From Utricularia gibba (Eukaryota; Plantae; Magnoliophyta): a DNA stretch of 64,000 nucleotides. The notes beneath the pieces were generated by a model, which saw nothing but the letters and a program-made list of their open reading frames with translations, did no database searches and was not told where the DNA came from. The stretch is from contig NEEC01000016.1 of NCBI GenBank assembly GCA_002189035.1, positions 2,480,001-2,544,000 of the forward strand, given 5' to 3'. Position numbers and translations under genes: made by a program. Of the stretch, positions 6,975 through 61,389 are shown one piece after another (the stretch's first letter is position 1; every line of letters starts with the position of its first letter).

Positions 6975-8541
6975 TAGCCAGTCATGTTCAAGAGATAAAG
7001 CATGCATAAATTTAAGAGAATATCTCAAACATTGCTAAACAAACAGTCATGGTCAAATATTTAGCAAGAAAAAGAAAACAAAGCACAATAGTTGTTTTGT
7101 TCACATTTGAGATTTTTGTTCTAAAAAATCATCTTCTTTTTCCTTCCTTCGTGTTCCTCCTCCCCTCCTTGGGTCTGGAGCGGTTCTCCTTCTTCCTCTC
7201 TCTCAAAAAATATCTTTACTTGTTTCTTTCCCATTTTTCAAAGTTAATACACTATTCCTGATATCTATATTGTTCTTGGCCTAAACCTACAACTGTTGGC
7301 GGCTGAATATCAATCATGCTTCCTCCTAGCGTCTTGTGTCCAGAGAATTATGCTTATAAACTAGCTAAATATGTGCATAATGTTGTTGTTAATACTTAGA
7401 AGAGCATTAGAAATCATAATATAGAATAAATCATCAATTTAGTCCATGTTATGCATAGAAATACAAATAACACTACAGTGAAAAAAAATATTAAAAATCA
7501 TAATCAAAATACCTAATTTTATCATGAAACATGTCAATTTTATAACCTAAAAACATTAATAAAATGTGTGTCATCATGTCCGCATAAGACAAGTCAGTAT
7601 TCTGTCCCATAAGTTCTGATTGCACCGAAGATGTGTCCACATGTCGGCCACGTCTTCTGTGAATTTTCTCTTTCTAGATGCACCTACGAAGCTGATGGAA
7701 TTATCCCCATTAGCCCGATCCTTCTCGAAGATCTCCCTCCAATGTGTGTAATGCGGCCAAGACTTATGTGTAAGCATGTACAACCTCGGAATATGCTGCA
7801 ACAATCACATGATTAATACATGGAAATGAATTCTTCAAATATGAGAACGATGCACACCTATTCAATCTTCTTCTAGACATCGTCAATGGCATCCACCGTG
7901 TTGGTTGCCTCATTGAAACTGGTGCCCGACTTGGCTAAGAAATCAATAAGCACATAATACTCTCGTTTCCAAGTATGTACCTTTTGGAACTGCACCGATG
8001 TCAATTTTGGGACAAAGGTTCACGAACACTGAATGGACCGCTTGGTGATGCCTGCCTCTGAAACCATTTTAAATTATCCACCCATCTTTACTTCACACCA
8101 TAGATGAGATCCTTCTCCTCCTCGTGCTTCTGAGTTTGCTTGGTTTTCTTACTAGAATCTACAAATGGGCTTGCTATATCCATGAATGGAGAAAACAAGG
8201 AAGAAACAAGGGAAAATGTGTAGAGTAGATTGTTTATTTTTGGAGACAAAAGTATTGGTCGGTGGGAGTATGAGGAGAAAAGGGAAACCAAATTATTTCA
8301 CAAATTACATTTTTAATGAAGCAGGGTATATCAGTCATTTTATACATAAATTCATACAATACCTGATTTTTATCCCACATACCAAACACATTGTGACCCA
8401 TAACTCAAATAACTTATATCTACTAACCAAACAAGAATGACCTTCTAATCGAACAAAAAAGGTTTATATAAACCCAAATAAACTAAACCCATATTAAATC
8501 TCTACCCACATATCAAATGTGTCCTAATGGTTCTCAAACAA

Positions 8542-8742
8542 GTTGACAATGCAATATTTCCATATCCCCACAAATACATGGTTCATAAAAAAGATTCAAC
8601 CTTAATGAAAGAAGGTGAGATGAAGACTTTTCTTGAAGTACTTGTACAAGCACCTAGTGTAACATCATTTATGCATGATTTTCACATTGTTGAAGCACCA
8701 TTGAATGAAGACCATATGATTGAGAGTATTACAAAGCTCTAA
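8542..8742 (+). pseudogene. Orphan last exon of a NIF/FCP1-like (HAD) phosphatase gene
   Basis: VDNAIFPYPHKY...EGEMKTFLEVLVQAPSVTSFMHDFHIVEAPLNED aligns with the last exon at 30216-30425 and with the plant consensus AIFPxSY...GDLRVYLEGLAxAxxVQxYV. The acceptor appears mutated (CAA instead of CAG); no upstream exons found. Confidence 0.6.
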
Positions 8743-11134: not shown

Positions 11135-12358
11135 TCAACATAGCGAAAAGATTATTGCTATACACAAGAACCCCAAAGATAATCGAACTCCTCCAGTTCC
11201 ATGAATGACAAGCCGGGGAACTTCAGACGTGTGCCTAGGTAACCAAATAGAGTTATCCGGCGCCAAGGCTGAATCCGGCGGGGCTGCTCCTGGGATGAGA
11301 TCGTCCACCTCAATAGGATTGTTTCCGAACAGCTCTCTTGGAAGCAAAACTTTCGATACCCCGAAGATTGCCACAGGATTTTGATCGAAAGCAGTTTGCG
11401 TCACTGACGCCAGAACTATGCCGGTGTTGATTCCTACCGACCCATTGACTCGGGAAATGTTCAGGGTGAAACTGCCCGCTCCCCTTTGCTCTGTTGCAAG
11501 CGTGGGCTGTACGGGATTTACAATCGACTGTAGAGAGCCCAACGGGTAGTATGAATGAAGGACGTGAAATCTTAGTACCACCGCCTTTACGTCTGCCGGC
11601 AGCGACTGGAATTTAACAGACGACGGCAGATCCGCGAACGCCTCATCGGTGGGAATGAACATTGTGATTCCGGCGCCGCCCTCGTCGGCCTCAAATTCGG
11701 AAACCACTCCCGAGGCAAGTAGCATAGCTGCAGCCACATTGAAATCGTGACCATCGATTAGCGCTTTAGTGATGTTAAGCCCTAGTGGGGGGCGAGTTTC
11801 GGATGTCATCAGATCGAGTACGTAAGGGATTAGCAGGGAATCTAGAGACATGATGGACACGTTGTACGGAAGGGTTTCAATTTGGGAGAGAAGAGTGGCG
11901 TTGGAAGCCGGGGAATGGAATGTGACGGCCCCAGAGGAGGAATCGAAGGTAATGTTAACGGTGCCGGAGTTAGCGGCTGCGCGCCCGGTAGTTTGAAAGA
12001 GGGTAGTGACGAGTTTCCCCGTCGGAGGGAAGCGACGAAGATCGGAAAAGGAGAGATACTCAAGCAGGACATGGTAGCGGAGGACGTCAGCGAGATCAAC
12101 GGAGGGGTGCAGGGACGCGGTGGTTGCGCGGAGGTAGGCATCGGGGACAGCGAGAATGGTGAGGGAAGATCGAGAGGCAAGATCTGCGGCGACAGCGGTG
12201 GAGGAGAGGAGGGCGGAGAAGTCGGAGAGGGCGGAATGGCCGGACAAGAGACGGGTGACGTCGATTGAGGAAACCAAGGAAAAGAGAAAAGGTAAATAGA
12301 GTAAAAATGTAGGTGCAAAACGGGGAACCCGGACTGGGTAAGCCATGGCTGGCATCAA
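11135..12358 (-). CDS. FLA4: Fasciclin-like arabinogalactan protein, FLA4/SOS5 type (intronless, 407 aa)
   Basis: Signal peptide; two fasciclin domains (LTILAVPD...LRYHVLLEYLS; GITMFIPTDEAF...LRFHVLHSYYPLGSLQSIVNPVQPTLATE..GAGSFTLNISRVNGS; TQTAFDQNPVAIFGVSKVLLP) closely matching Arabidopsis FLA4 as recalled; hydrophobic GPI-signal-like C-terminus. Confidence 0.93.
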   Translation of the reverse strand: MMPAMAYPVRVPRFAPTFLLYLPFLFSLVSSIDVTRLLSGHSALSDFSALLSSTAVAADLASRSSLTILAVPDAYLRATTASLHPSVDLADVLRYHVLLEYLSFSDLRRFPPTGKLVTTLFQTTGRAAANSGTVNITFDSSSGAVTFHSPASNATLLSQIETLPYNVSIMSLDSLLIPYVLDLMTSETRPPLGLNITKALIDGHDFNVAAAMLLASGVVSEFEADEGGAGITMFIPTDEAFADLPSSVKFQSLPADVKAVVLRFHVLHSYYPLGSLQSIVNPVQPTLATEQRGAGSFTLNISRVNGSVGINTGIVLASVTQTAFDQNPVAIFGVSKVLLPRELFGNNPIEVDDLIPGAAPPDSALAPDNSIWLPRHTSEVPRLVIHGTGGVRLSLGFLCIAIIFSLC

Positions 12359-18390: not shown

Positions 18391-21300
18391 TGTCATGACC
18401 CACTTTTAGGGCCTGGGAAAGATAAGTCGTGACCACCCAGTCCTAGCTAAAACACTAGAACTCAGGGTGTCTTTCATTACATGATCTAATAATAGTAAAT
18501 GGGTAATTACTTATGTAAACTAGATATAAGACTTTGTCCAAGTACTTTTGTATAACATAGTTCATAAGTTCATAATGAAATAGATTCAAAACAAAAAGTA
18601 TATTATACATACATATATCATACTCATACAAACCTAGTAAACAAGCTACACTAATATATACTCATATTCATAGAACTCTGGAAAGCATGGTTGATCACTG
18701 GACCTCTACTGGCTCCCTTCATCCCCTAAAATAAATAAAAGAGTGGTCATGCTTTTAAGTTTTAAAACAAGTGAAGATCAAGAAAGAATATAGAGAATTT
18801 ATAAAAGAAACTTGAAACACATTGTGACTCCCATAACTATATTTTCTCACTTCTCATGTCCATCTAGCCTTGGCCTTGCTATCAGTCCATGATAGGTGAG
18901 ACATAAAGTGCCCTTATTCATGATTCCACACCCAGGAGAGCCACCTCCAATCATAAAACCACAAGCGCAGGCCATACATAACTTATCATATCATATCTTG
19001 CATAGGTTTCATACTTTTTGACCTTCCATTTATACATGGTGCCTCAGACATGTTTGACATATTAGCCATAGTGCCCGTGGTATAACCACGTTGCTGAAGA
19101 TATGCGTCCATATCCCCTCCATTCTTTCCTATCTTGTTTATCTTAAAGATACATATTGCAAATATCATCTTAAAGATAACAAAGGTGGCTATCAGTGAAA
19201 AGAATCATACTTTTGGGACTCAAAAATAGTTTTTCTTAAATAAAATGAAATAACCCACTCCCTTGTTAGAACTTTCATATAACATAAAAGGGTTTTGAGC
19301 ATAGACACAATCACGTCCAGAGTAATGGAAATTAAACACCAATATCACATAGGCACATAACTTTTCAGAATTCAATTTCAAAGATAAGTAAAGCTTCAAA
19401 AGCAATCATGCCACTTACCTTAACACCTTAGACTCCAAACCAACTCTAAAGCTTCGTTCACTGAAGGCACTATAACCTTTCATTCAAACCTCTCCTCCTT
19501 GCCTTTTGTAAAACTCAAAAATAAAATGAAAGAACCTTACATTCCATCATATATATATATTCCCATCTATATCTCCTCCTTATTTTGCATGCCACATGTG
19601 ACACACATGCATGACGTACAAGTGGCGCACATGCAAGAGGACACATGGTGCACCTGCAACATGACATGTGGCGCACATGAGAGATGACACATGTCACGCA
19701 CTTAGTGGTTGTCACTTAGATACATTTGATTGGCTAGGTTAGTATTGTTGGGTTTCTCGTAGACATTGTATGTCTCAAAAGCAGCGGAATTTTAAAATTT
19801 TTGAGAAACCCCCAATGCAAATCTTGGAATACGGTATACATTAGACAAAGGGATTCTGAAATACCTTTCAAATGACTCCGTTGATTACCAACCGCCAATA
19901 GCAGACGGCCTCTATGGTATCCACACGTGGAGCACTCCGTTGATAACTTTCTCAAGGCTTTTGAATGCTGGTCGAATTTCTCAGGTGCTAGTAGAGAAAA
20001 ACGCCTCCTTGTAGATTAGTCTTAGAGAGCACGAAGACCTTTTTTAAGCAGATCTCAAGATCTAAATCTTTTTTATAGATATTTTTGACATATCAAATCA
20101 TATCTATATGAGATCTTTTATTTTGAGTTTAATCAATATTAATCTCAAAATAATTCTCTATTTAATTTATCTACTTTACCAATTACATCTCATGTAATTG
20201 TGTCATTCTATTTTATATCGATGAGTGACTCCATTATTGTGTGTGACCCTATAGGCTTCCTCCATCAAGGCCGTAATAATGGATTTATTAATTAACTCTT
20301 AATTAATCAAATCCATCATTATCGATCATGAGTGATGTCTAGCAACATATCATGATTCCCAAGATTAAAGAATAATCAGGTGAACTCATTGAGCCTTTCC
20401 ATGACCAGCCACCATGCAATGAACAGCTTTCATCATACTTATATCTCATTCGGTACCAGAACATGGGTGTGTGTCTTTCTGATGTATCGAACTTATAATT
20501 GCATTCAAGCACTAACACTCAATGACCTACTCAAACAATTCGAGTGTCATTACCCTGGGCCCAGAACTTACTGTTAGGCTTTGATGTAATTACTTGAGAT
20601 ATGATCTCATTGCTAACATGAGTGATGAATCATTTATTGATCAATCAACTATCTCCAACCTTAAGGAATCACATCCCTACTCATCCATACTAGGCAAGCC
20701 ATGGTTAGACTCCCATTAGTAATGAGCGAAAATGTGAACTTAAGATCAAGATAACTTTGTTGACCTCAAGTTTAAGCTTACTTGCACGGCTGTCATATTC
20801 GAGATCATGCTACTGACACTTGGTTAGCTTGCCATAGTAGCATCTCGAAGATGAGTCATCTAGTGAATCGATTCTCTAATCGATACCCACACATAGGTTC
20901 TAGTAATCACATTACATCAATTGTTAGAACCATTGCCTAAACTGTTTAGGGAACTCAATGTGTGCCAGCTTATCCGTATTTGTGATATACTCATTTCACA
21001 AATACTTCTAGCCAGGGAGATTTAACTTGATCATGAGTGCTTGAAGAATCTCACATTATGATCTCATCATAATTTCTATAGCACATAGATCAAGTAGAGG
21101 ATTTTATGAATGATATAAATTTGATGACAATTCAAAGTAAATATCAAAAGATAAGATTTTCCAATGAGTTGATTGTCTCTAGAACACATACACTAACAAG
21201 TATAAAGTAGAACAAGTTAAAAGTAAAGAGTAAAGTCCTTAAAGCTTGAATCCTAATACTACCCATCCATTAACAAAGTATCCTAATCATAGATAATTCA

Positions 21301-24189: not shown

Positions 24190-25309
24190 AGTACACATGC
24201 ACCTAGCACCACAACGTGTATAGCTTGTCCTGTATTGTGCTTTTGCTAAACTGTCATAAAAAAAAAGTATTGTGTAAAACCCTTTCCCTTGTTCCCTTTC
24301 CATTACTTGCGATTACAATTAATTGCAGTAGTTATTAACTAAAACGTGTATTAAACTCCCTACATGCATGCAATCATGACACGTAATGTGTTACTTTTCT
24401 CCAAAAGATTCATTATCGGTGTTCGTTCAGCTACCCTATTTTCGATAAATGCTTTGACAACACCGCTTACTAAAACACCCTACACCCCTCACGGTGTGCT
24501 ATCAGTGTCCGTCACCTAGAAGTGTACGCCATCATCGATTTTAGCAGTTGCTATCCATTGAATGTCAGCTTTTGAAGTGCTTACTTTGTTATTTTTTGTA
24601 GATGTTGACATCAGAAAAAATACGTGTGAGATTCATAGTCCTAGAGCCATTTCGTATGTGGGACAAATTGCCTGACGAAACATAAGACTCCGAACCTCTA
24701 GAAAGGATTGTACCCACACACTTCGTGGAGAGCACTAAGCATTTTTTATATGGGTTGTGCCTACTTCCACCTCCATTCATGATAGAGATAGTTGTGGCAC
24801 AACATATCTAATTCTCGTACTAAACTCCACAATCCCTTGCACACATATTGTCATTTATTGAGATATGCAAGGAGGAGAGCATATCGTTGGAACTACATGT
24901 CTTTTGTGTGGTATTTGTGTGCGTGCACTTATAACAAACCTTAGAAGTGCGTACGATGATTGGTAGACTAGTTTTGTATGGGTGTGTCCACTTAGCCCAC
25001 CCACATAGCAAATAGTTCTGAAGGACTTCGAGCACATTGGACAGTCTTCTGATAAGTCTAGTGCACAATCTTTCTTGGGTACACTGGATATGATACATAG
25101 AGATCTACTATTTGTGTATATTGGCATTGATAGCACACAAATTTTCCTATTTTTATGATATGAAAATCACAAATTTTTAATTATGTTTAGTTTTTAATTT
25201 CATAGTTTTAAGTGTTTTTATATGATTAGGGAAAATGTGATTTTTTGTGTATTAGTGGGCTAAATCCTTTGATTTAGCCCACTTGGCTAAATCCTAATCG
25301 AAGGAATTC

Positions 25310-25670
25310 CTCTTGGCAACAGCTGGGCACACTCTTGTCAATCAGAGTGTAAGGGAGAGTAGGCTATTCCTTGCTCCTATAACCAGCTATTTGGAAGAAA
25401 TCAGTGAAAACCGAGGCATGGACGGACAAAGGAAGGAGATGGAATCTGATTCCCAGGAACTGCGTACCGTAGTCAAGGCCCATCACTTAGGTTGTAACTT
25501 TTATTTCTGCATTCCAAAAACCCCCTTTTGCAAAACCGTGACATTTTGTGAAAGTTCTTTACAAAACACTCTTCACGAAAAACAACTCCCTGTGATCGAT
25601 ACTCGTACTATGCTTTCTAGTGTTTTACGTTTTAAATATTTAAAATTTGTTGAGGAAACGACACGCAACA
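25310..25670. repeat. LTR fragment (family F) abutting Athila gag
   Basis: Similar to 47700-48162; both copies end GAGGAAACGACA(C/T)GCAACA. Confidence 0.6.
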
Positions 25671-25679
25671 GAAGGCAAT

Positions 25680-26630
25680 GGGATATCTGGAGCCACAAAG
25701 GAAGAAATATGATCCCTATTCGAACACTTACAATCTTGGTTGGAGGGATCATCCAAATTTCAGATGGAATAACAATGATAATTCTTACAAGGGTGAGAGT
25801 TCATCAGATGGACAACAAGGATTTCAGCAAAATTTCCAAGAGTAGCAGCAACGTTCTTATCAAGCTCCACCATTTCGCAAGCCAAACAAGCAAATGCAAC
25901 AGCAATTTCAGCCTCCAAACCAGAATAATTCTAGAGGAAATTCAAGAAGTTCATTGGAGGATATTTTGAAGACTTTTATGACCCAATCTATCAAGAACCA
26001 AGTTGAGAACCAACAAGCTATAAAACAAATGGAAATTCAAGTTACTCAGCTAGCAATAGAGGTTGGGGAACTGAAGCAAAAAGGAAGCTTACCGTCGCAA
26101 GCCAAACAGAATCCCAACTCTGGGGGAGAACAAAATATCAGCGCAATGATACTAAGAAGTGGGAAAGCAAAACTTTGAAGAGAATTAGTCCAAACTGAGA
26201 GTAATTTAGCGGCGGGAGAAGTGTATGAAGTTGAGGTTGAAGGAGAAGCTGAAGAATAGGAAGCGGAGATTGCTACAAAACCTCTTGTGGTAAAAGTAAA
26301 CCCACCACCATTTCCAGGAAGGCTGAAAGTGAGAGAGGAGCAAAATGAGAAAGAAAAAATGTTGAGAGCTTTAGGTAATACTCAGTTAAATTTGAAATTG
26401 TTGGAGTATATTGACTTGGTGCCCAAAAGCGTGAAATACTTGAAGCAGCTCTATATGTCAAAGCCAAAATTGAAGGAAAAAGGTAAGGTGAAGCTGAGTG
26501 AGAGTTGTTCAGCCCTTTTGATTAGGAAATTATGGGAAAAATGCATCTTGGGTTCAGTAATGTTGTTACTTTTCTTGCTCAAAGGTTATGCTATGATAAA
26601 ATTTCCGAGTTGGAATTCCTGCATGTAGAA
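25680..26630 (+). pseudogene. Athila-type gag C-terminus/protease linker remnant
   Basis: YDPYSNTYNLGWRDHPNFRW; IKQMEIQVTQLA...GSLPSQ...NISAMILRSGK; PPFPGRL...VPKSVKYLKQL...KVKLSESCSALL. Confidence 0.85.
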
Positions 26631-26851
26631 ACAAAATTAGCCCTCTTAATGCTCATTTTCTTAAAACTACTGGACTAATTCGGGCATGAGGAAGTGGATA
26701 TGTCTTTAGGTCTCTTGCGGGAAAGAACTCCCATTGAAGGAAAAGGGAGAAACCTCTGCTCAAACACTCACAACCCGAAAGAATGAAAAAGGCTGCTGAT
26801 ACAAGGAGCAAATTGGTATGGTTTATCACAGGCTTGGGCATTTGCTAAGAG

Positions 26852-26975
26852 TAGAGGTGGGTTTGGTTCGAACCGAAACCTTCGGTTTCGGTTCCAGGAG
26901 GTGGATGTCAATACGGTTCCGGTTCCGGAACCGTGGAACCGACAGTTACGACCCGTGTATGAACCGTACTGTTCA
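26852..26975 (+). mobile_element. hAT left terminus with subterminal repeats
   Basis: TAGAGGTGGG start followed by dense GGTTC/GAACCG repeats typical of hAT ends; right TIR and TSD not found. Confidence 0.6.
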
Positions 26976-27684
26976 TGGTCCCGACACTCACAAGCTTAGG
27001 TGGGTGTCTAAAAAAATGTAATTTTATTGTATATGTTTTCAATTACTAATAATTTAATCACTTTAATAATTTATTTCATTTATTGTATATACTATAAATT
27101 ATAAAATTAGAGTGAAATTAATAAATATAAATGTATAACCTCAATAGAAAAATACTAAATTACTCAAATTTATTGAATAATTTCGATAGTTCAACCAAAT
27201 AAATATTTTAACATTTCATTATCTATATATTTTTCTCAATAACCAGTTATGCATTGCCAAGATCTCTAATTTATCTATATTGATAGCACAATGTATATTT
27301 AAACATAAGTATATATTGAAAATACTCATGTGAAGACTGCCATGACAGCATCATATTTAAAATATATTTTTTATGTATATATTAATCTCAACGGCTAGTA
27401 CATGCATTTGTGATTGTGCACACTATGGAGTTGCACATGGTTTTGAAAGTATCCGTTGCTATTAGTTTAATAAAAAAATTTGTCTATATATATGATATGG
27501 TTGTCTTATAGTTTTTCCATTACTTTCTCTAATTGTCTCATCACTCATTATCAGAAATAACTCTATTTCAACTTCTACATACAACTCGTGATTGGAGATA
27601 CTCTTAAGTCTCAAGTTTCAAATTTCCACTTGGACGACATTGGTGAGGCCTGCAGGGTAACAGGTTTTTTTTATTTTTTACTAA

Positions 27685-29791
27685 ATGGAGGGGTCTGGTT
27701 TACTAAATTCGTCTCAAGCTTCTCAAGCTGATTCTACTATACCTTGTGTTTTTGAAAATGATAGAGAATTTTCTTTTGGGGAAGATCTTCAATTTTTACA
27801 AGAGCTTGAATGTAGTCCTTTACCCGAACATAATGATTTTTCTAATCCTCAAGAAGTGGGTTCTTCTACCTCATCGAGTCTCCTTTGTCGTAAAATATCA
27901 AAAAATACTAGTGATGATTCTTTGGATGTTGGAGAGCATTTTGTTGTTTCTAATCCCAAAAAAATTTCTTGTAATAATTGTGGTAAAGAGTATACTTTCA
28001 AAAAAGGTTGGGGAACCGATATATATAAGAGGCATGTTAGAGAGAAGCATAATGATAAATTACCACAATTTCGTCAGACTAGATTATGTTTAGAGGGTGA
28101 TAATAGTGTGGGATTATCGAATTTTGTTTTTAATTATAAACTTTTTCAAGTAAGTGTGGTGCGTTATTTGATACTTAATGAACTTACTTTTTCATTAGTT
28201 GAAAAATCTTCTTTTAATGATATGTTGAAACAAGGTCAACCGTGATACAAAAATTTTTCTAGGAAAACCGCGCATCATATGGCACTTGAGGATTCTAAAA
28301 ACATGCGTGACTCTTTAATTTCTACTTTTAAATCGCTACAATGTACTTTTTGTTTGACTTGTGATGGTTGGAAAGGTTGTAACAATGAGAGTTATATTGT
28401 TATTACATGTTCTTGGGTAGATAATTTTTGGTGTATGCAAAAACGAATTTTAGCTTTTCAAGAATGGCCATCACCACATAATGGTTTTTCTATTGCTAAA
28501 ATCATTGAAAAGGTCACAGCATTTTATGGAATATTTGATAGGATTTTTTCTATTTCTTTGGATAATGCCTCTACAAATAAAAATGCTATTGACATTTTGA
28601 AAAGTAGCATGAATCCTATGTTGAATAACATTTTTTTCCACACTAGGTGCACATGTCATATCTTAAATTTGTGTGTTCAAAATGGTTTAAAAGAATGTGA
28701 AATTTTTTTAACTCCTATTTGTGATTTAGTGAGTATGATTAAAACTACACCTAATAAAAGAGATAATTTTAAGAGGATTTGTCAAGAAAGAAATATCTTT
28801 TATCGAAGTGATTGTCCAACTAGATGGAATTCTACATATGATATGGTACAATTTTTGATTCCTTATGAAAATGTTCTTATTGAATTTTGTGAATCTTTCA
28901 TGGGTTTCAGTTTCTTGACTCATTCTATTTTTGAAAAAATAAGAGATTTAGTAAATTTACTAGAAACATTTTATTCTTGTACTAAGATTTTGAGTGGTAT
29001 TTTATTATCCAAATTCTCAACTTGTGCTTTCATGTATTTGTAAAATTTCGTTTGCTTTTTATGATCATCAAACTGATTGTGATTTTTTGGGAGATGTAGT
29101 GCGAAATATGAAAAATAAGTTTTTGAAATATTTTGATGAAATCCCACAATTGTTTCTTATTGCACCTATTTTGGATCCTCGGGTTAAATCTAGAGGTGTG
29201 AAAACATTACTTGAACCCATTTCGGAGTCATTTAGTGTAGAGAATGTTGCTTTTTCCATTAAAAATTGTGAAGAAATAGATGTTGATGCTAACAATATTT
29301 TACATGCCATGTATTCCCTTTATGCTTTTAAATATAGTGATCTTAGTGTTCCTATTCCTAAAACATGTAATAATTCGATGTTTGGCAGTCGCAATCCGAT
29401 GGACATTATTCGTAGAAAACATAGCTCATTTGTGTCATCCTCTTCATCATCTTCATTAAATTTTGTTGATCAAATTACACTTTACAATAATACTCGTATT
29501 GTTGAGGGTGTTGATGATGACAACTTTGATATATTGGGTTGGTGGAAGACAAATTCTACTACTTACACTATCTTGGTTAGAATGGCCAAAGATATTCTAA
29601 CACCTTCAGCATCTACAGTGGCATCCGAAAGTGCGTTAAGTGCAGGGGGGCGAGTTCTTAATCACAAGCGGTCCAAGTTGAACATAGAGACCCTGGAGGC
29701 ATGCATTTGTCTAAAGGATTGGCAAGAGGCATTGAAAAGAAATCAAAGATTATACTCAAGTTCAAGTGAAGATGAAGTTGAAGACTCCTAG
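27685..29791 (+). pseudogene. hAT (Ac-like) transposase with BED finger and dimerization domain; premature stop at 28243-28245 and frameshift at ~28994-29043
   Basis: CNNC...H...KH BED finger; LTCDGW; SLDNASTN; HTRCTCHILNLCVQ; CPTRWNSTYDM; ILDPRVK; FDILGWWK...MAKDIL..SASTVASESALSAGGRVL...LEACICLKDW. Confidence 0.95.
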
Positions 29792-30215
29792 GTTGATAAC
29801 ATTGTGTGCTTCATGAAGTACTATTACTTTGTAATAGTATGTTGTATTCATGCCTTTCATTAAAATTATATGATCCAGGCACTTACCAAAACCTTTGGAT
29901 ACATCCTTACCAGGCACCCACATTTACGCATGTGGATGCTTGGAATAGGGTTACACTCATACGGATCGAACATAAGGATAGAGTGCAATATTTTCAAGTC
30001 AAATAAATAATACACTCGATCCTTATCGTTCTGAAATATAGAGTGTATTTATTTTATTATACACTGATATTCGATACTTAGAAAACATAAATACTCCCCT
30101 TATATTTTTGGTGATGCCTACACTTCATTTTGGAGGCTCCCTCTAAAAAAGTCATCAACAAAAATACTACAACTACAATATAAATGTTTAAAAGAACTAA
30201 TATTAGAGGCTCCCT

Positions 30216-31444
30216 CTAACAATCTTGTAGGCATGCATAATACTCCCATAAAGCATGTCCCTCACGTATCGGAGGCTGTCCTATTCGGTTCTCATGAACA
30301 TAACTTGGAACATCATGAGCATACCGTAACCCTTCAAGGAAAGTCCGCATCTCACCATCAACATTTTTTGATGCATCATCCCTATTAGTATGTGAATAGG
30401 GACTTGGAAAAACATCATTATTTTCCTGAAAAATTAATGGTTAGTTTTTATGTGTAACCAAGTGTATGCTAGAGTAGAAAAGCAAAAATGACTTACCGGA
30501 TTTTTCTTTGACTTGTGAGGCGAATCATCAATCAATAAGGTGTTTTGACGGTCATATCTTGTGTTTAATCCATTGTTGACAGCCCATGCACGATTCAACT
30601 CCTTCATGTAGACCGTGTTGCTAGGATTGCTGTGAACACGTACACCCATGTCCGTAGTCATCGTTTAATCCCACACAAAAATGAGTTTATCAAATTACGA
30701 AGGTAGAAAGACCCATTTAGTGATTGCTTGTAGCTGCTCCCTACAAAATAAATCAATTGCAAGAATGGGCACCATTCTAAATACCAATCTCAAAAAAAAG
30801 TAACACACATACCTGCCACGGGATGACCCTAAGGCTACATCAAAATTATCCATACACCACCTAATAAAGTCATGGGCATATGGACATAGAAAGACTGCAT
30901 AAATTACACCAAAAATCACCTATGATATCTCACAAATCTTGAATGCATATAACACCCAAAAATAAGTGTTGTTTTAGTACTTGATCGGCCATATATAATT
31001 TTATCTGGAGGGATTCGTGATCTTGACGGTCCAGCCCATACATGATGTCTGCGAGCACACCATTGACATCCAAGATTATCAGCTTTCGTTGAGGTTCAGA
31101 GGTACTCAAAGAGTGTTCGGTATATGCCCAACGGCTCTCATACCAATACAACTTGTAGCGAAGCTCTTAATTCTCCTTTGTTATAAATTCAAGTCTCTCA
31201 TCCACATCATTGAGACCATGTGTGAGCTTGTCCCCTTCAACATCATTACACTCTTGTGTCCTCTCATTACTAGACAAGTCTTCATTCTTTTGGGATACTC
31301 TAGGATTCTTCAACACACCACACCAATAACATTTTGTCCCCGGTGCATCCACAAATGGTGGTAAAATGTCAATAAAACTCCTTTGCATACTAGAGAAAAG
31401 GAGTATAAGATCTTGCACATCTCTCTTGTGCAAGGTATCAAATC
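30216..31444 (-). pseudogene. Five-exon NIF/FCP1-like HAD phosphatase pseudogene with N-terminal coiled-coil segment (exons 31444-30981, 30894-30813, 30776-30713, 30670-30497, 30425-30216)
   Basis: RKLIILDVNGVLADI; PPDKIIYGRS|IFLCPYAHDFIRWCMDNFDVALGSSR; VYMKELNRAW; NTLLIDDSPHKSKKNP|ENNDVFP...GEMRTFLEGL...IGQPPIRE...WEYY. Splice phases between these five exons are mutually consistent. Lesions: TAA at 31167-31169, 1-nt frameshift near 31012, mutated acceptor (TGG) and TAA at 30665-30667. Confidence 0.85.
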
Positions 31445-31489
31445 CTACAATAAAAAAAGATTTATTAACAATAGATTCAACAAAAATAT

Positions 31490-31990
31490 TCAATAAAAAT
31501 ATTAAATATGAGTAATTTCGACAAGTCTAAACTCGACATTAATAAATTGAATACACACATTGGAAAAGAGTATTGAAAAAAAATATTCAATAACACTAAA
31601 CTATATAAATATATACTCAATAAGAATAGATTAAAAAATATTCAATAATGATAGATTGAATAAAAATATATAGAAAAGTATTCAATAAGAATAGATTGAA
31701 TAAAAATACATTGAAAAAAACATCTTTCAAAAATATTGAATAAGAATAGAATCAAAAACAAATTAACAAACAAATTTAATTAGATTAGATCGAATAAAAA
31801 ACAAATTACTGAAAAATATTCAATAAAAACTAGATTTAATAAGATTAACTTCACTAAAAATATTTAATAAAACTATTCAATAACAATAGATTTAATAAGA
31901 GTAGATTAAAAAAACGTTCAATCATAATACATTCAATAAAAACATTGAATACAAATATTCAATAAAAATATTTCATATTTTGATTCATAT
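31490..31990. repeat. AT-rich tandem-like repeats (TTCAATAAGAATAGATT-like), putative intron
   Basis: Recurrent AATAAGAATAGATT / TATTCAATAA motifs ending at a polypyrimidine-AG acceptor (31445-31446, minus strand). Confidence 0.6.
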
Positions 31991-32029
31991 TTCTTTTAGC
32001 AATACAATGAAAGATTTATCTTTTGCCTT

Positions 32030-32553
32030 GTCTACTACTTCACTCGAATTAGGATCCATTTGAGGAAATTTTGTTTCCATTTGAGGAAATTTTGAGGAAA
32101 TTTTGTTTTCATTGGAGGATGTATCCAAACAAAGCTTGTCCACCATTTCTCAAATCCTCATCTCACATCTTTCACTAGCACCAACCCTTTTTTCCCCTTT
32201 AGGGTGTAGTGGTTCTTGTTTGGAGTCCTAGAGCATACACTCACAGCAAAAAAATAACGAAGTTCCACCTCAAGAGATAACTCCTCACAAATACTCACAA
32301 AAGCCAACACATATGAGATAGATCTTAGAGTCAAATGACATAATGGAATCTCTAAACATTCTAATATTTCTTCTAAAATGGGCAACAATGGTAAGCGCAA
32401 ACCACAACGAAAATGCTCTGTGATTAAGGAAAATCCCATTGGACCCACACGGTTTGGAATTTCACTCTCAATCAACTCATCCGATTCTTTGTCCCAAATC
32501 TCATATTCATCCGGTATCAAGAATCTAGTTCTCAATTTTTCAGAAGTGTACAT
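32030..32553 (-). pseudogene. Transposase_28 (PF04195)-like transposon ORF remnant
   Basis: LRTRFLIPDEYEI...GFSLITEHFRCGLRLPLLPILEEIL..LEIPLCHLT.RSISYVLAFVSIC fits the family pattern as recalled; the frame continues past TGA (32158-32160) as GFEKWWTSFVWIHPP. Confidence 0.6.
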
Positions 32554-33282
32554 CTACAAAACACCCATAGGTATTGTATAAAAAATCAAACTACAATAAT
32601 TGGACAAGGTATTTCAATTTGGAAGACAGATCAGCAATCCATGGTGGAAAATAAATCACATACCTTGTTTAATTTCCCCGACTAGGGAGGACGGGGAAAG
32701 AGGTAAGAAAATTTTCTTACTGGATGGGTGGGGATTAGGTTGTCTTAATTGACAATGTGGGGAGTGGGTAAAGTAGGGACTGGGGTGGTGATGTGTAGTG
32801 CTATGTATGAGTGTGTGAAGAGTTAGTTTAATTACCCAAATCATTAGGAAATGATTACACGCAATATGTCTCTACGTTCATAGTTGTTGGTAATTACTTT
32901 TTTTCTTTTCAGGTGAGAAGTGTCGCTCGCTTGAATCGATCCGAACCCACTGTGTAATTCTTTTGGAAATGCTGTTTAATTACTCTAATTTTGAGGCATC
33001 GAGAGTTGCTAATGTGGGCGACTAGCACCGTCACCCGTAAAATTGTATTATCTAGGCACCCATACTCTAATATTTGGGAATTGCGCAATTTTGAAAGAAG
33101 ACTTAATTTTAAAAATACCAATGTTTTCGCGCATTAATTGGAATATAAAAAATTGAAAATGAAATTCTTTAATATATCCTAAATATTACAAAAAATATTA
33201 AATCACATGTTAATTAAACATTGAAATAAAATTTCAGTAAATAAAGAATATACATTGAAAAATTAAATTTCAGTTAATATAC

Positions 33283-33540
33283 AATAAAATTACATTTTTT
33301 TAGACACCCACATTGGCTTGTGAGTGTCCGGGAAGAACATCTGAAAGACTAAGACCATTCTCTAGCCACCCGCATTTGCTCATGACTCATGTAAGAGTGT
33401 CATGAGGGCACTTGAGATCATTTTCCAAGCACTCACATCTATCGTCAGTGTGTCTGGCAAGGGGTGTTTGAAAAGATTTTCCAGGCACCCACTTCCATCA
33501 TATGGGTGTATGAAAAAAGTGTCTGAAATAATATACAGTT
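33283..33540. repeat. Array of short hairpins (GACACCCAC...GTGRGTGTC), CACTA-like subterminal repeats
   Basis: At least three hairpins here; related hairpins at 26983-27010 and 29875-30050. Confidence 0.55.
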
Positions 33541-33740: not shown

Positions 33741-33794
33741 AATCTACGATTTAATTTTGAGAAACCCCCAACGCAGATTTTGGAATACGGTATA

Positions 33795-36700
33795 TGTTAG
33801 TGTATGTGTTCTAGAGACAATCAACTCATTGGCAAATCTTATCTTTTGATAGAATTGTGATCAAATTTATATCATTGATAAAATCCTCTACTTGATCTAT
33901 GTGCTATAGAAATTATGATGAGATCATAATGTGAGATTCTTCAAGTACTCATGATCAAGTTAAATCTCCCTGGCTAGGAGTATTTGTGAAATGAGTATAT
34001 CACAAATATGGATAAGCTGACACACATTGAGTTCCCTAAACAGTTTAGGCAATGGTTCTAACAATTGATGTAATGCTATTACTAGAACCTATGTGTGGGT
34101 ATCGATTAGAGAATCGATTCACTGGATGACTCATCTTCGAGATGCTACTATGGGAAGCTAACCAAGTGTCAGTAGCAACATCTCGAATATGACAGTCGTG
34201 CAAGTAAGCTTAGACTTGAGGTCAACAAAGTTATCTTGATCTTAAACTCACATTTTCGCTCATTACTAATGGGAGCCTAACCATGGCTTGCCTAGTGTGG
34301 ATGAGTAGGGATGTGACTCCTTAAGGTTGGAGATAGATGATTGATCAATAAAGGATTCATCACTCATGTTAGCAATGAGATCATATCTCAAGTAATTGCA
34401 TCAAAGCCTAACAGTAAGTCTTGGACCCAGGATAATGACACTCGAATTGTTTGAATAGGTCATTGAGTGTTGGTGCTTGAATGTTATTATAAGTTCAATA
34501 TATCAGAAAGACACACACCCATGTTCTGGTATCGAATGAGATATAACTATGATGAAAGCTATTCATTGCATGGTGGCTAGTGATGGAAAGGCTCAATGAG
34601 TTCACCTGATTATTCTTCAATCTTGGGGATCATGACATGTTGCTAGACATCACTCATGATCGATAATGATGGATTTGATTAATTAAGAGTTAATTAATAA
34701 ATCCATTATTACGGCCTTGATTGAGGAAGCCTATAGGGTCAAACACAATAGTGGAGTTACTCATCGATATAAAATAAAATGACACAATTACATGAGATGT
34801 AATTGGTAAAGTGGATAAATTAAATAGAGAATTATTTTGAGATTAATATTGATTAAACTCAAAATAAAAGATCTCATATAGATATGATTTGATATGTCAC
34901 AATATATCTATCATCAAAAAGATTTAGATCTTGATATTTGCTCCAAGGTCTTCGTGTTCTCTGAAACTGATCCACAAGGAGGCGTTTTTCTCTACTAGCA
35001 CCTGAGAAATTCGACCAGCATTCAAGAGCCTTGAGAAAGTTATCGACGGAGTGCTCCGCGTGTGGATACCATAGAGGCCGTCTGCTATTGACAGTTGGTG
35101 AACAATGGAGTCATCTTAAAGGTACTTTGAACATCCTTATGTCTGATGTATACCGTATTCCAAGATCTGCGTTGGGGGTTTCTCAAAATTTTTAAAATTC
35201 CGCTGCTTTTGAGACATACGATGTCTACGAGAAACCCAACAGTGGCATCGGAGTAAGGTTACAAAATACATGTATATGTTAGAATCTTTGCTGATTTTAC
35301 GAGATGTTCTCGTATGTTGCCTTGCTGGTGACACATTAGAATCTTTGCTGATTTTACGAGATGTTCTCGTATGTTGCCATGTCGGTGACACGTTATAATC
35401 TTTTCTGATTTTTCAAGATGTTCTAGTATGTTGCCTTGCCGGCGATCATCATAATAGCATGTGATTTTGCGAGATGTTTTCGTATGTTTCCTTGCCGGCG
35501 ATCATGAGAATAGCATGTGATGCACGAAATCTGATTATGTTGGATTGTTTTGCTGCCCTAGGATGCACGAAATTTGATTGATGATTGATGCTTTCGAGAA
35601 GCATATCTTACGTGTATATGCGCAGCATGATGATGGTTTATGTGTGAAAGTCGTGGGGCATGTTGGCCTTTGCACGAATTTTGATTATGATGATCATATT
35701 GGTGAATTATCGATGCATATGATGTTTGATAATTTATTTTTGATCAAGGCATCTAGGGTCAATTAGGATTTTCGAGCTTTATGTATGAAAATCCAAGGAA
35801 ATGATGCGTTATGAACGAAATGGCAAGGGTTGTCAAGATTCCTATCTGATAGGATATCAATATCTATAGTGCAAGTGTTGCCTATGGAAAAATCCCCTAT
35901 CAAATAATTAAGCTTATTCCTTCCACTGACATAAGGAGAACGAGAGTCATTTTTAGTGCATAGAGTTGTTGGCTACCGTCAAGCTCTCCACTACACATGA
36001 TGTGTTTGTGTTTTGTTAGTAAGGGCTGCCATCTCGAAAAAAATAGTGGGAGTATATCACATTTATTAAAGACCAGTTAGATGTGATTTAAGGAACACTA
36101 CATGATGTGTTTGCTTTCTCTTCTTCAGGTTGAAGATATGTCCTCCAGCGTGAATTTGAGATCTATTCTAGAGTCCAACAAGTTGGTTGGCTCGAATTTT
36201 ACTGATTGGCACCGCAATTTGAGAATTGTTCTCAAGGCAAAGAAGATTGCTTACATCCTTGAGCAAGATGTTCCTGCACAACCCAGGGCTAATGCAGCTG
36301 AAGATGTTCGGTGTGCATATCAGAAGTATCTAGATGATGCTGAGCTTGTCTCCTGTATCATGCTTGCTTCGATGGCCCCTGATCTCCAAAAACAGCATGA
36401 GGCGATGACTTGCCAACAGATGATAACACACCTCAAGGATCTGTTTGGTGAGCACTCACGACTTGAAAGGTTCAAGACATCAAAGTTGTTGTTCAATTGT
36501 CGCTTGGCAGAAGGACGTTCTGCTGCTGATCATGCGACATTGATGTTGAGTTACATTGAGAAGTTGTCCACTCTTGGTTTTATGTTGGATAAAGACTTGA
36601 GTATTGACTTAATCCTTACCTCACTACCTATAGCTACTCATAGTTTGTGATGAACTATCAGATGAACAAGATGGATCAAACTATTCCTGAATTGATTAAG

Positions 36701-38665
36701 TTTCTCAAGTCTATTGAGACAACTATCACAAAGGAACAAAAGAATGTCATGCTTGTTTCTTCAAGGAAAAAGGTTTCCAAGAAGAAGAGTCAAGACAAGA
36801 AACTCAAAGCTAAAAGTGAGATCAAAAAGAAGAAGCCTATTGAAAAACGGGCTAAGGGTGAATGCTTTCATTGCGGGAAATCTGGTCATTGAAAGAGAAA
36901 CTGCAAAGCCTATTTAGAGTCAATCAAGGGCAAGAAGCAGAATGAGAATTCAGCTTCAGGTATACACATGATTGAGATTAACACTACTATCAAGAATGGT
37001 TCTTGGGTGTTAGATTCTGGTTGTGGTGCTCACATTTGCACTAACATGCAGGACCTAATGAGTAGTAGAATCTTGAAGAAAGGCGATATTCACCTAAGAG
37101 TTGGGAATGGTGCACGAGTTGCTGCCATGGTAGTTGGGACTTGCCACATCGCCCTACCTTCTAGATTATCTCTTAAATTAGATTCTGTTTATTGTGTTCC
37201 CTCATTGTCTAAGAACATCGTCTCTATTTCTTGTTTGGACAAGATTGGTTTCGAGTTTTCTATAAAGAACAATTAATGTTCCATACGACGAGGGAATGTG
37301 CAGTATGGTACTGCTACGATAGTAAACGGAATATATGTTTTGGATCAGCATGATTCGGAATAGATTAACATGTGCATAAAAAGGCCAAGGATTGACAATG
37401 TCTTGAATTCTTACCTCTGGCATTGTCGTTTAGGCCATATAAACAAGAAGCATGTTGAGTACTTATATCGATTGGGATATTTGGACTCAGAAGATTTTGA
37501 ATCTTATGAAACATGCGAATCTTGTTTATTGGGCAAAATGACAAAGCAACCTTTTCTAGGAAAAGGAGCAAGAGCTGAAAACTTATTGGATGTAATACAT
37601 TCTGATGTATGTGGTCCAATGAGCATCACTGCTAGAGGGGGTTTCTCGTATTTCATCACTTTTATAGATGACCATTCAAGATATGGATGCATCTACTTGA
37701 TGAAACGAAAATCTGAAGCCTTTGAAGAGTTCAAAGAATTTCGGATGGAGGTCGAGAACCAGCTTGAGCGTTCCATCAAGAAACTTCGATGAGATCGTGG
37801 TGGGGAATACTTGAGTAATGAATTCAAGAATCATCTGAAGGACAATGGTATTGTCTCAGAAAGAACTCCTCCTGATACACCTGAGCACAATAGTGTTTCT
37901 AGGAGGATAAATCGAACTTTGCTTGACATGGTTCGATCAATGATGAGTTTTGCAGAACTACCAAGGTGCATGTGGGGATATGCTTTAGAGGCAGCGGCTC
38001 ATGTTTTGAACAAAGCCCCATCGAAATCGGTTGAAACCACTCTTTATGAGATTTGGACTGGCAGAAAACCGAGTTTTTCCTATCTCAAAGCTTGGGGATG
38101 CCCTGCTTAGGTAAGAAGGTTGAAGTCAGATAAGTTGGAGAACAAATTTGACAAGTGTTTCATTCTTGGATATCCACAAGAAACCAAGGGATACTACTCC
38201 TATAATCCTCAAGAGGGAAAGGTTTTCATCTCGAGGAATGCTGTCTTTTTAGAGAAAGAGTTTCTCCTCAAAGAAGCAAGTGGGAGTCGTTTTGAACTTG
38301 AGGAGATGTTTGAGAACGAGCCAGTGACACCTATAGAGATGCCAGTGGGTGACTCAAAAGGTAATCTAGGCTCACCATCTCGAAATTGTGTCCCAGAAGC
38401 TGGTAATGTACCAGTGAGCAATCAACCTGAGCAATCTAACTTGCCAAATGTACCAAGCACGTTTTCTGTCAGAAGATCAGTTCGACAACATAACCCTATT
38501 GTGAGATATGGTTTCATTGTTGATGCCGAAGGCATGGGAGACCTCATATTAGATGAGGAACCTCGGACTTATGACGAAGCAATCAATAGTGCTAAGTCAA
38601 GTAAATGGCTTGTTGCCATGGGGGCAGAAATGGATTCCATGTATGAGAACAATGTATGGAAGAGT
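33795..38665 (+). mobile_element. Angela-type Ty1/copia, 3'-truncated: 5' LTR 33795-35241, PBS-Met 35242-35253, gag-pol 36120-38665
   Basis: LTR TGTTAG...CCCAACA; PBS GTGGCATCGGAG; gag NLRSILESNKLVGSNFTDWHRNLRIVL; CFHCGKSGH*KRNC knuckle; protease WVLDSG; LWHCRLGHI; integrase HSDVCG/DDHSR/DRGGEY; RT start KWLVAM..EMDSMYENNVW, then a break. Several stops and a frameshift. Confidence 0.95.
35279..35520. repeat. ~58-bp tandem repeat in the copia leader (about 4 copies)
   Basis: TTAGAATCTTTGCTGATTTTACGAGATGTTCTCGTATGTTGCC... at 35279 and 35337, then decaying copies. Confidence 0.85.
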
Positions 38666-38833
38666 AATGGTTAGGCTCCCATTAGTAATGAGCGAAAATG
38701 TGAGCTTAAGATCAAGATAACTTTGTTGACCTCAAGTCTAAGCTTACTTGCACGGCTGTCATATTCGAGATCTTGCTACTAAAACTTGGTTAGCTTCCCA
38801 TAGTAGCATCTCGAAGATGAGTCATCCAATGAA
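38666..38833 (-). repeat. Inverted Angela LTR fragment
   Basis: Reverse complement of ~34120-34290; collinear with 20702-20870. Confidence 0.9.
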
Positions 38834-48783: not shown

Positions 48784-50345
48784 TATTAGGTTTCCCATAG
48801 ACATCGTATGAATTCTATGTAGCGGAATTTAAAATTTTTCGAGAAACCCAAATCACAGATCTTGGAATATAGTATACAGCAGATAAAGCGATTCTAAAAA
48901 TACCTATCAATACACTCCATTGTTTACCAACCGCCAATAGTAGATGGCTTCTATACTATCCACATACGAAGCACTTCGTCGATAACCTTCTCAAGGTGCT
49001 TGTAGAGAAAGTTGCCCCTTGCAGATAAATCTCATAAAGAATGAAGAGATGGAAATCTCTATGGATAAAATCTTTTTGATTATCTAATATAGATATTTTG
49101 TAACATATCTAATCAAATCTCCATAAAGATCTTATCTTATGTAGATACATATATGTTCCAAATCTTATCTATATCAGATATTTTATTTTGAGTTTAATCA
49201 ATATTAATCTCAAAATAACTCTCTATTTAATTTATCCACTTTATCAATTACATCTCATGTAATTGTATCATTCTATTTTACATCAATGATTGACTTTACT
49301 ATTGTGTGTGACTCTATAAGCTTCTTTATTCAAGACAGTAATAATGGATTTATTAATTAATTCTTAATTAAGTTACATGGAAGGTGATACAAGTATGATG
49401 AAAGTCATTCATTGCATAGTGGCTTTTCATGGAAGGGCTCAATCAGTTCACCTTATTATTCTTTAATCTTAGGGATCATGATATGTTGCTATACATCACT
49501 CAAGATCGATAATGATGAATTTGATTAATTAAGAGTTAATTAATAAATCCATTATTACGACCTTGATTGAAGAAGCCTGTAGGGTCACACACAATAGTGG
49601 AGTCGCTCGTTGATATAAAATAGAATGACACAATTACATGAGATGTAATTGGTAAGGTGGATAAATTAAATAGAGAGTTATTTTGAGATTAATATTGATT
49701 AAACTCAAAATAAAAGATCTCATATAGATATGATTTGATATGTCACAAAATATCTATCAAAAGATTTAGATCCTGAGATATGCTTCAAGGTCTTCGTGCT
49801 CTCTGAGATTGATCCATGAGGGGACGTTTTTCTCTACTAGCACCTGAGGAATTCGACCAGCATTCAAAAACCTTGAGAAGGTTATCGACGGAGTGCTCCA
49901 CGTGTGGATACCATAGAGGCCGTCTACTATTGGCGGTTGGTGAACAACGGAGTCCTCTAAAAGGTAATTTCAGCATCCCTTTGTCTGATGTATACCGTAT
50001 TCCAAGATCTGTGTTAGGGGTTTCTCAAAATTTTTAAAATTTCGATGCTTTTATGACATACAATGTCTACGAGAAACCCAACAGATGTGTGACTCCACTA
50101 TTGTGTGTGACCCTATAGGCTTCTTCAATCAAAACCGTAATAATGGATTTATTAATTAACTCTTAATTAATTAAATCTATCATTATCGATCTTGAGTAAT
50201 GTCTAGCAACATATCATGATCCTCAAGATGGAAGAATAATCAGATGAACCGATTGAGCTTTTCCAGGACCAGCCACCATGCAATGAACAACTTTCATCAT
50301 ACTTATATCTCATTTGATACCAGAACATTGGTGTGTCTCTTTCTT
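48784..50345. repeat. Cluster of three Angela LTR fragments in alternating orientation
   Basis: 48784-49372 (minus type), ~49380-50083 (plus type, ends CCCAACA), ~50088-50345 (minus type). Confidence 0.85.
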
Positions 50346-60895: not shown

Positions 60896-61389
60896 TGTTG
60901 AGGGCAAAAATCGGTATCCGAGAGAAGGTCGATTTTCTGGTTATGGGTGCAGCCGGATGTGCTGCACCTAGTTACGCTTTTGGTGTTTCGCTTGGCTCAT
61001 TTAGCAGAAATGAAGATAGGCGGAGATTTTTACGTGGAAACTGTCGGAGAACGGAAAAACCACGGAGTGTTGATGCAAGAAAAAGAGAGTCTTGGGAAGT
61101 AACAAAAAGGTAATGCTTCTGAGATCACCTTGGATGAAAAACGACTCATGAACAATAAGAATGACCAAAACCCTCATTCACGCATTCCTAGTAGGGTTTA
61201 TATATACCCAATACCTAGGTTAACCAACAGTGGGCCACAATTATTGAAAACACACAAAAAGCCCAACAACTCGAATCCAACACTTCCATGCTCGAACTCA
61301 ACACCTTTTTAATCTGAAATATAACATTATGACACAAGATTAGTGCTTCCAATCACCTTCAGACTTTGGATTGAGGCTGATCTCCAACA
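60896..61389 (-). mobile_element. 3' LTR (494 bp) of a Ty1/copia element
   Basis: TGTTG...CAACA termini; PPT GGGGGGAG (61390-61397, minus) immediately adjacent. Confidence 0.9.

Follow-up and report, generated by a model that had tools for sequence, protein, structure and literature searches.

A decayed putative TRP28-NIF gene beside a hAT transposase in Utricularia gibba

The stretch of DNA analysed here, called the window throughout, comprises 64,000 nucleotides of the Utricularia gibba contig NEEC01000016.1 (positions 2,480,001 to 2,544,000). On its minus strand, between 32553 and 30216, an open reading frame (ORF) resembling TRP28 (Transposase_28, Pfam PF04195) is followed by a linker and by a domain of the NIF/FCP1-homology type, and the whole unit reads as one five-exon gene when it is spliced at canonical sites and the frames are followed through. 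A decayed hAT transposase adjoins it. Judged from its sequence, the locus genuinely belongs, in decayed form, to a lineage of TRP28-NIF genes associated with transposons; the copy in the window is dead and unable to make protein. The gene model, the comparison of introns and the tests of constraint all refer to the 64-kb window alone.

A five-exon unit and its lesions

All four introns of the unit are of the GT-AG type, and their phases (1, 1, 2, 0) match from exon to exon. In the list of parts below, HMM positions refer to a profile hidden Markov model (HMM) of the NIF domain that is 233 positions long and was built from 56 PF03031-type relatives.

32044-32553, minus strand: exon 1, TRP28 (PF04195-like) domain, placed by Pfam, language-model features, paralogue alignment and frame bookkeeping
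31445-32043, minus strand: putative intron 1, 599 nt, GT...AG, 18% GC, with degenerate AT-rich short repeats
30981-31444, minus strand: exon 2, linker and start of the NIF domain with motif I as D-V-N-G, placed by ORFs, HMM and splicing
30813-30894, minus strand: exon 3, NIF domain, HMM about 44-73, placed by HMM, intron comparison and splicing
30497-30740, minus strand: exon 4, NIF domain, HMM about 73-160, holding the DDSP motif, placed by HMM and splicing
30216-30425, minus strand: exon 5, C-terminal part of the NIF domain, HMM 158-221, with a TAG stop (coding 30425-30219)

The exons have a GC content of 37-41% and hold one or two stops in frame as against 5-23 out of frame, and intron 1 is closed in all frames, with 13-17 stops in each. 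The linker ORF (31167-31493, minus strand) continues in frame across a single TAA into the RKLIILDVNGVLADI motif, the linker exon being open from its splice acceptor as far as motif I of the NIF domain. Once spliced, the NIF part contains only two internal stops before its natural stop. The unit as a whole carries six lesions, namely four in-frame stops and two frameshifts, all listed on the minus strand.

32160-32158, minus strand: TGA in exon 1
32101-32091 / 32090-32080, minus strand: immediate 11-nt tandem duplication in exon 1, shifting the frame by 2
31169-31167, minus strand: TAA in exon 2
within 31037-31015, minus strand: frameshift in exon 2
30697-30695, minus strand: TAA in exon 4
30664-30662, minus strand: TAA in exon 4

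The duplication in exon 1 is central to the assignment of that exon. Past the TGA the frame remains open down to about 32080, and the TRP28 frame lies 2 nt away from the frame leading into the phase-1 donor at 32044, which is the shift that the 11-nt duplication introduces. Because the duplication explains this offset, exon 1 appears to belong with the NIF exons; this is the main argument from within the window, and it makes it likely, by the logic of splice phases, that the TRP28 and NIF exons formed one gene.

Much of this structure had been described in an earlier note on the same DNA, and it holds up on analysis. The PF04195-like ORF, the AT-rich intron-like tract (32043-31445), the exon that runs through one TAA into RKLIILDVNGVLADI and the whole NIF/FCP1-like domain with consistent phases are all recovered. 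The earlier note had counted four further exons past the one that carries motif I, where splicing and the HMM find three. It had also spoken of stop gains together with splice lesions; the stops are present, and every splice site is intact, the remaining damage consisting of the two frameshifts.

Identity and descent of the two domains

The four NIF-bearing exons are matched in order by the 56-relative HMM over positions 7-221, with E values from 1e-6 to 1e-18.

30999-31106, minus strand: NIF HMM match, HMM 7-42
30779-30898, minus strand: NIF HMM match, HMM 45-84
30461-30655, minus strand: NIF HMM match, HMM 101-168
30234-30425, minus strand: NIF HMM match, HMM 158-221

The Pfam profile PF03031 matches one exon alone weakly (14.1 bits, cutoff 21.8), and seven long public relatives, two of which are among the 56, reach 54-134 bits with the same profile. 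A search of 1.84 billion representative proteins with the last exon (30216-30428) returned 211 proteins; identity is 44-56% for the best of them, Asteraceae fragments being near the top, and no representative exceeds 56%. The other three NIF-bearing pieces find the same proteins in the same order, pieces 3 to 6 matching 82, 87, 118 and 148 of 150. The solved structure closest to the plant NIF subfamily is UBLCP1 (3shq), followed by SCP1. Several public NIF relatives carry from two to eleven tandem domains, including a 1770-aa dinoflagellate protein and proteins of Sphagnum.

Motif I of the NIF domain in the window is D-V-N-G and not the catalytic D-x-D-x-T/V. Canonical FCP1, SCP and UBLCP1 enzymes have D-x-D-x-T at this site (D-I-D-Y-T in the aligned UBLCP1), whereas D-x-N-G is found in all 56 aligned plant relatives. 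The earlier note had correctly read DxN in place of DxD, and what can now be added is that the substitution is not peculiar to this copy: by its distribution, D-x-N is the ancestral state of the whole plant NIF subfamily and not a lesion. The acidic pair of motif IV (DD or DN before SP) is kept as DDSP in exon 4. In HAD chemistry the second aspartate of motif I serves as general acid/base, and an asparagine in its place should slow or block turnover. Since D-x-N is shared by the whole subfamily, the D-x-N-G domain is probably not a conventional phosphatase, in the host or in a transposon, and the invariant motif marks a whole subfamily of plant NIF proteins as probably not ordinary phosphatases. 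From the same chemistry, the domain may be a phospho-protein binder or a very slow enzyme.

The TRP28 assignment is based on several lines of comparison. The ORF in exon 1 (32158-32553, minus strand, 131 aa) matches PF04195 with E=1.8e-5 and 25.3 bits over profile positions 4-62 of 69, just below the gathering cutoff of 26.2 bits. In a protein-language-model comparison (Atlas) it scores 0.96 to PF04195 clusters, sharing 197-203 of 256 features, and 74 of 100 matches fall inside the PF04195 set. A paralogue also lies elsewhere in the window, as does a second piece of the NIF domain.

24602-24990, plus strand: second TRP28 copy, decayed, with several stops and cut off downstream (alignment to exon 1)
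8539-8721, plus strand: second copy of the NIF last exon, 36% identical to exon 5, upstream exons missing (alignment, HMM)

The second TRP28 copy is 39-40% identical to exon 1 at the amino-acid level (E=4e-16 by tblastn, 9e-26 by tblastx). Because the Atlas similarity and this paralogue back the sub-cutoff Pfam match, we assign exon 1 to TRP28. Similarity between the two copies starts exactly at a TTTTGTAG|ATG context and stops at a W-x-x-P stretch near 32116 and 24990, respectively. The context itself, at 32553-32561 and 24594-24602, resembles a splice acceptor directly ahead of the start codon. The TRP28-NIF gene may have had a further, non-coding exon upstream of it. A word search with the TRP28 ORF found no match among lengths of 72-229 aa, Pfam found none in pieces of the second TRP28 copy, in the NIF fragment or in the ORFs near that fragment, and the AlphaFold model of the TRP28 ORF, built without an alignment, is unusable (mean pLDDT, the predicted local distance difference test score, of 39). 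Directly downstream of the second TRP28 copy, at 25650-26750 on the plus strand, lie Q/N-rich and K/E-rich open frames that look like the gag/pre-protease region of retrotransposons, Pfam giving no supporting match.

The origin of the NIF part can be approached through its introns. Six public host loci from monocots and dicots (Tanacetum, Helianthus, Cichorium, Artemisia, Tarenaya and the grass Urochloa) were compared; they hold eleven NIF gene copies, ten of them with several exons in the locus, and they have introns in common at HMM positions 43/44, 73, 96, 159 and 178. The unit in the window keeps three of the five (43/44, 73 and 159) and lacks those at 96, within exon 4, and at 178, within exon 5. 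Because these positions are common to host genes, the comparison supports descent of the NIF part from a host gene, by copying as DNA with the introns included and with later loss of two of them. The NIF fragment at 8539-8721 (8539-8715 in the intron comparison) has no break at position 178, so that it lacks the same host intron. This shared loss places the fragment in the same derived lineage and implies that the lineage is repeated within 64 kb, which, together with the second TRP28 copy, supports the view that the NIF unit belongs to a repeated, fast-evolving lineage.

The divergence of the NIF part can be set against neutral decay. The unit is 33-40% identical to each relative, and of the 66 columns with at least 90% conservation among relatives it keeps 46 (70%), as compared with 14 of 79 variable ones (18%). 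In a simple neutral simulation of decay to 40% identity over 187 codons, 7.8 stops arise on average and the probability of two or fewer is 0.013. The stops are thus too few for the divergence, most of which must have accumulated while the frame stayed open, and the death of this copy is comparatively recent; that the NIF part evolved mostly under coding constraint is supported. In a tree its terminal branch is 2.12 long against a median of 0.24 (about nine times), and the unit groups among short NIF-only proteins with a Shimodaira-Hasegawa-like approximate likelihood-ratio (SH-aLRT) value of 92, a placement that is unsure given the long branch.

The hAT neighbour and the competing explanations

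The following features lie around the fusion gene.

27685-29791, plus strand: decayed hAT transposase in three ORF pieces, with zf-BED, RNase-H-like and hAT dimerisation domains (Pfam)
29860-30060: spacer rich in hairpins that separates the hAT transposase from the fusion gene at their 3' ends, with the motif GTGGGTGCCTGG
26980-27034: left arm of an inverted repeat, 55 nt, 93%
33277-33331: right arm of the same inverted repeat, 55 nt, 93%, inside the motif/hairpin array 33270-33540

The adjoining hAT transposase that the earlier note had reported is borne out by Pfam (PF05699 at 73.9 bits and PF14372 at 37.7 bits; zf-BED weak at 18.3 bits, under its cutoff), and the best public relative of a hAT piece is 32% identical over the full length. 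Transposase and fusion gene are convergent and lie tail to tail, with their stops 425 nt apart. Both are enclosed by the 55-nt inverted repeat, an arrangement that fits a two-gene hAT element of about 6.5 kb. The two hairpin arrays previously seen on either side of the unit fare differently when folding is compared with shuffled sequence: the left one (29860-30060) is strong at z -5.5 and the right one (33270-33540) marginal at z -2.5. The motif GTGGGTGCCTGG is present in both, and otherwise the arrays have no alignable sequence in common. At 26852-26945, TAGAGGTGGG is followed by a unique cluster of GGTTCGAACC, GGTTCCGG and CGGTTTCG palindromes that look like subterminal motifs; position 26852 resembles a hAT terminus on account of its hAT-like TAGAGGTGGG start, but no inverted partner for it was found in the window.

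With a probability of roughly 0.6, we read the locus as a dead five-exon TRP28-linker-NIF gene whose NIF part is host-derived and repeated and which most likely served as second gene in an element of the hAT type, about 6.5 kb long; a function can be proposed for it. In this reconstruction the NIF part would have been copied from a host gene as DNA with its introns, after which two introns were lost and the sequence evolved fast under constraint. The fusion gene, on the minus strand, would have converged on the plus-strand transposase within the element, and carriage by the adjoining hAT is likely from their arrangement. As to function, the TRP28 part would tie the protein to the element's own proteins or to chromatin. 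The NIF-like part, because it is without the general acid/base aspartate, would bind or slowly turn over a phospho-protein and would not act as a normal phosphatase. Together the two parts could tune transcription or silencing of the element, in a manner comparable with the PMD-PP7 pairing of MAIN/MAIL1 with PP7L and of MAIL3. A wider proposal is only tentative and rather doubtful: that selection has maintained an accessory protein of TRP28 and a catalytically altered NIF/FCP1 domain, and that this protein has moved between several superfamilies of cut-and-paste elements in one asterid (Lamiales-like) genome, where it would act on a phospho-protein of transcription or silencing in favour of the element.

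Several observations weigh against the two-gene hAT reading. The splice from exon 1 to exon 2 is deduced from phase logic: none of the listed sequencing runs in which the stretch occurs is on record as RNA, and runs from the same organism contain the locus as DNA contigs. Single-piece Pfam scores for both TRP28 and NIF fall under the curated cutoffs. TRP28 and NIF occur together just once in the window, the other two copies being truncated, and part of the long branch may be due to decay. As for the element, no pairing of ends gave terminal inverted repeats with an 8- or 9-bp target duplication, and a search for terminal repeats with a target duplication of 8, 9 or 3 bp around the whole block, the hAT alone or the NIF unit alone found nothing credible; the inverted repeat is just 55 nt long (subterminal), and the outer flanks of its arms differ. 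The earlier idea of a captured and amplified transposon module is borne out for host descent, repetition, constraint and hAT adjacency, and not for the ends of the element, none of which were found. A further point, and a weak one as the proteome of the source plant is absent from protein collections, is that PF04195 was found in 0 of 87 long N-terminal extensions of public NIF relatives. That absence is apparent from the intact 407-aa fasciclin-like arabinogalactan (FLA4-type) host gene at 11135-12358 on the minus strand: its best public matches, all from Lamiales and other asterids, are only 72-75% identical, and missing close relatives of the fusion gene therefore weigh little. The loci of the nearest NIF relatives (Tanacetum, Helianthus, Cichorium, Artemisia and two Logan contigs) likewise hold tandem host-type genes without TRP28 or a transposase. 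Such public negatives for TRP28-NIF show only that the lineage is unannotated in sequenced relatives.

It is improbable, in our estimate, that the two parts are chance neighbours, TRP28 being debris of a Retand gypsy element and the NIF exons a separate pseudogene, so that they were never one gene. Retand gypsy elements are documented to encode TRP28 as an antisense ORF, usually found there and of unknown role (PMC11963269; PMC6317226), and the separate occurrence of the other TRP28 copy and the other NIF fragment, the missing RNA and the failure to find a public TRP28-NIF protein among the relatives checked would all suit such an origin. The parts agree, however, in strand and order; the GT...AG tract that joins them is in phase once the 11-nt duplication is counted, and the linker exon is open into motif I. 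Moreover, no gypsy or other LTR-retrotransposon (long terminal repeat) pol lies in antisense arrangement beside either TRP28 copy, their neighbours being the hAT transposase and unclassified repeats.

Two further explanations concern the NIF part and its route into this region. Transduplication of the Pack type, whereby a DNA transposon acquired part of a host NIF gene without its ever functioning in the element, would account for the introns shared with host genes and for a decayed copy adjoining a transposase, and we hold it to be slightly less probable again than chance neighbourhood. Cargo that is dead on arrival is at odds with the long open-frame history seen here: the domain is complete from motif I through to its own stop codon, retention of conserved columns far exceeds that of variable ones, stops are too few for the divergence, and of the two lost introns one is missing from the second copy 22 kb away as well. 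The least probable of the alternatives is that a fast-evolving host NIF gene was duplicated and that the duplicate decayed where it happened to lie, within a transposon-rich region. The nearest public relatives are indeed short NIF-only host genes in tandem arrays, but the unit in the window stands outside any tandem NIF array, has transposon parts on both sides and a TRP28 exon directly upstream, and shares its derived intron state with a fragment in another transposon-rich spot.

Described relatives and the rest of the window

A handful of accessory genes are known from cut-and-paste transposons of plants, among them MURB, VANC, ULP1-type proteases and the plant mobile domain (PMD), and some of these counter silencing. 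The literature on PF04195, PF03031 or FCP1 with transposons yielded no description of a TRP28-NIF fusion or of such cargo, in agreement with the earlier note, which knew of none. According to the main text of a survey of accessory genes, those of plant DNA transposons include MURB, VANC of VANDAL elements and ULP1/Peptidase_C48 in MULEs; that main text does not mention a NIF/FCP1 or TRP28 accessory domain (PMC12973397). As far as that text describes them, these genes are like the TRP28-NIF gene in being second, non-transposase genes of cut-and-paste elements, some of them captured from the host, and differ in that the ends of the carrier are undefined for the unit described here.

The closest relatives of the NIF part are the plant D-x-N-G proteins, which appear in databases under names such as 'FCP1 homology domain-containing protein C1271.03c-like' or 'TIM50'. 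The unit is collinear with them over HMM 7-221, has the D-x-N-G and DDSP motifs and three intron positions in common with them, and groups with their short NIF-only members. It differs in its low identity (33-40%), its long branch, the loss of two introns, the upstream TRP28 exon and linker, its repetition, the adjoining transposase and its dead state. To the Retand antisense ORFs (PMC11963269) the TRP28 part is similar in domain type, as judged from the profile and from language-model features. In Retand, TRP28 is encoded antisense between pol and the 3' LTR; in the window it does not lie antisense in an LTR retrotransposon, and forms instead the first exon of a putative spliced gene beside a hAT transposase, with a NIF domain following.

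The nearest architectural parallel is offered by the PMD, an extra-ORF domain of gypsy elements that has been captured by MULEs too; its partner in transposon silencing is the PP7L phosphatase, and in MAIL3 it forms one protein with a PP7-type domain (PMC5418596, PMC7156037). As with TRP28-NIF, a gypsy extra-ORF domain is here joined to a phosphatase-type domain, either between proteins (MAIN/MAIL1 with PP7L) or by fusion, and the fused phosphatase part has also evolved fast after fusion; the module acts in transposon silencing and in gene expression. The differences lie in the domains, PMD as opposed to TRP28 and a PPP fold as opposed to HAD/NIF, and in the setting, host genes there and a transposon association here. 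The likeness is one of architectural analogy, not of homology. If the TRP28-NIF gene is what it seems, it would be a new kind of passenger for plant cut-and-paste transposons and would supply the first functional partner for TRP28, which has until now been described from Retand retrotransposons. Under the wider proposal it would also stand as a second, independent module of a retrotransposon extra-ORF domain plus a phosphatase-type domain beside PMD-PP7, which controls transposon silencing in Arabidopsis. The dead locus has its own value as one more dated and annotated member, in which the exon model is clear and the pattern of intron loss diagnostic.

The remainder of the window is rich in other repeats. 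Just to the right of the fusion gene, a separate repeated element of 1.4 kb (33753-35190) is bounded by 42-nt inverted repeats (98%). The sequence at its ends is found again at 19799-19844 and 49991-50032, and the part 33795-34500 has 94% identity to 21198-20485. A 57-nt unit follows at 35279-35505 in four tandem copies with 70-93% identity. Copia-type parts with gag, pre-integrase/integrase and SH3-like domains are found on the plus strand at 36102-38674, and a Copia-type open frame of 861 aa, with RVT_2 (287 bits) and an SH3-like domain, lies on the minus strand at 61343-63925.

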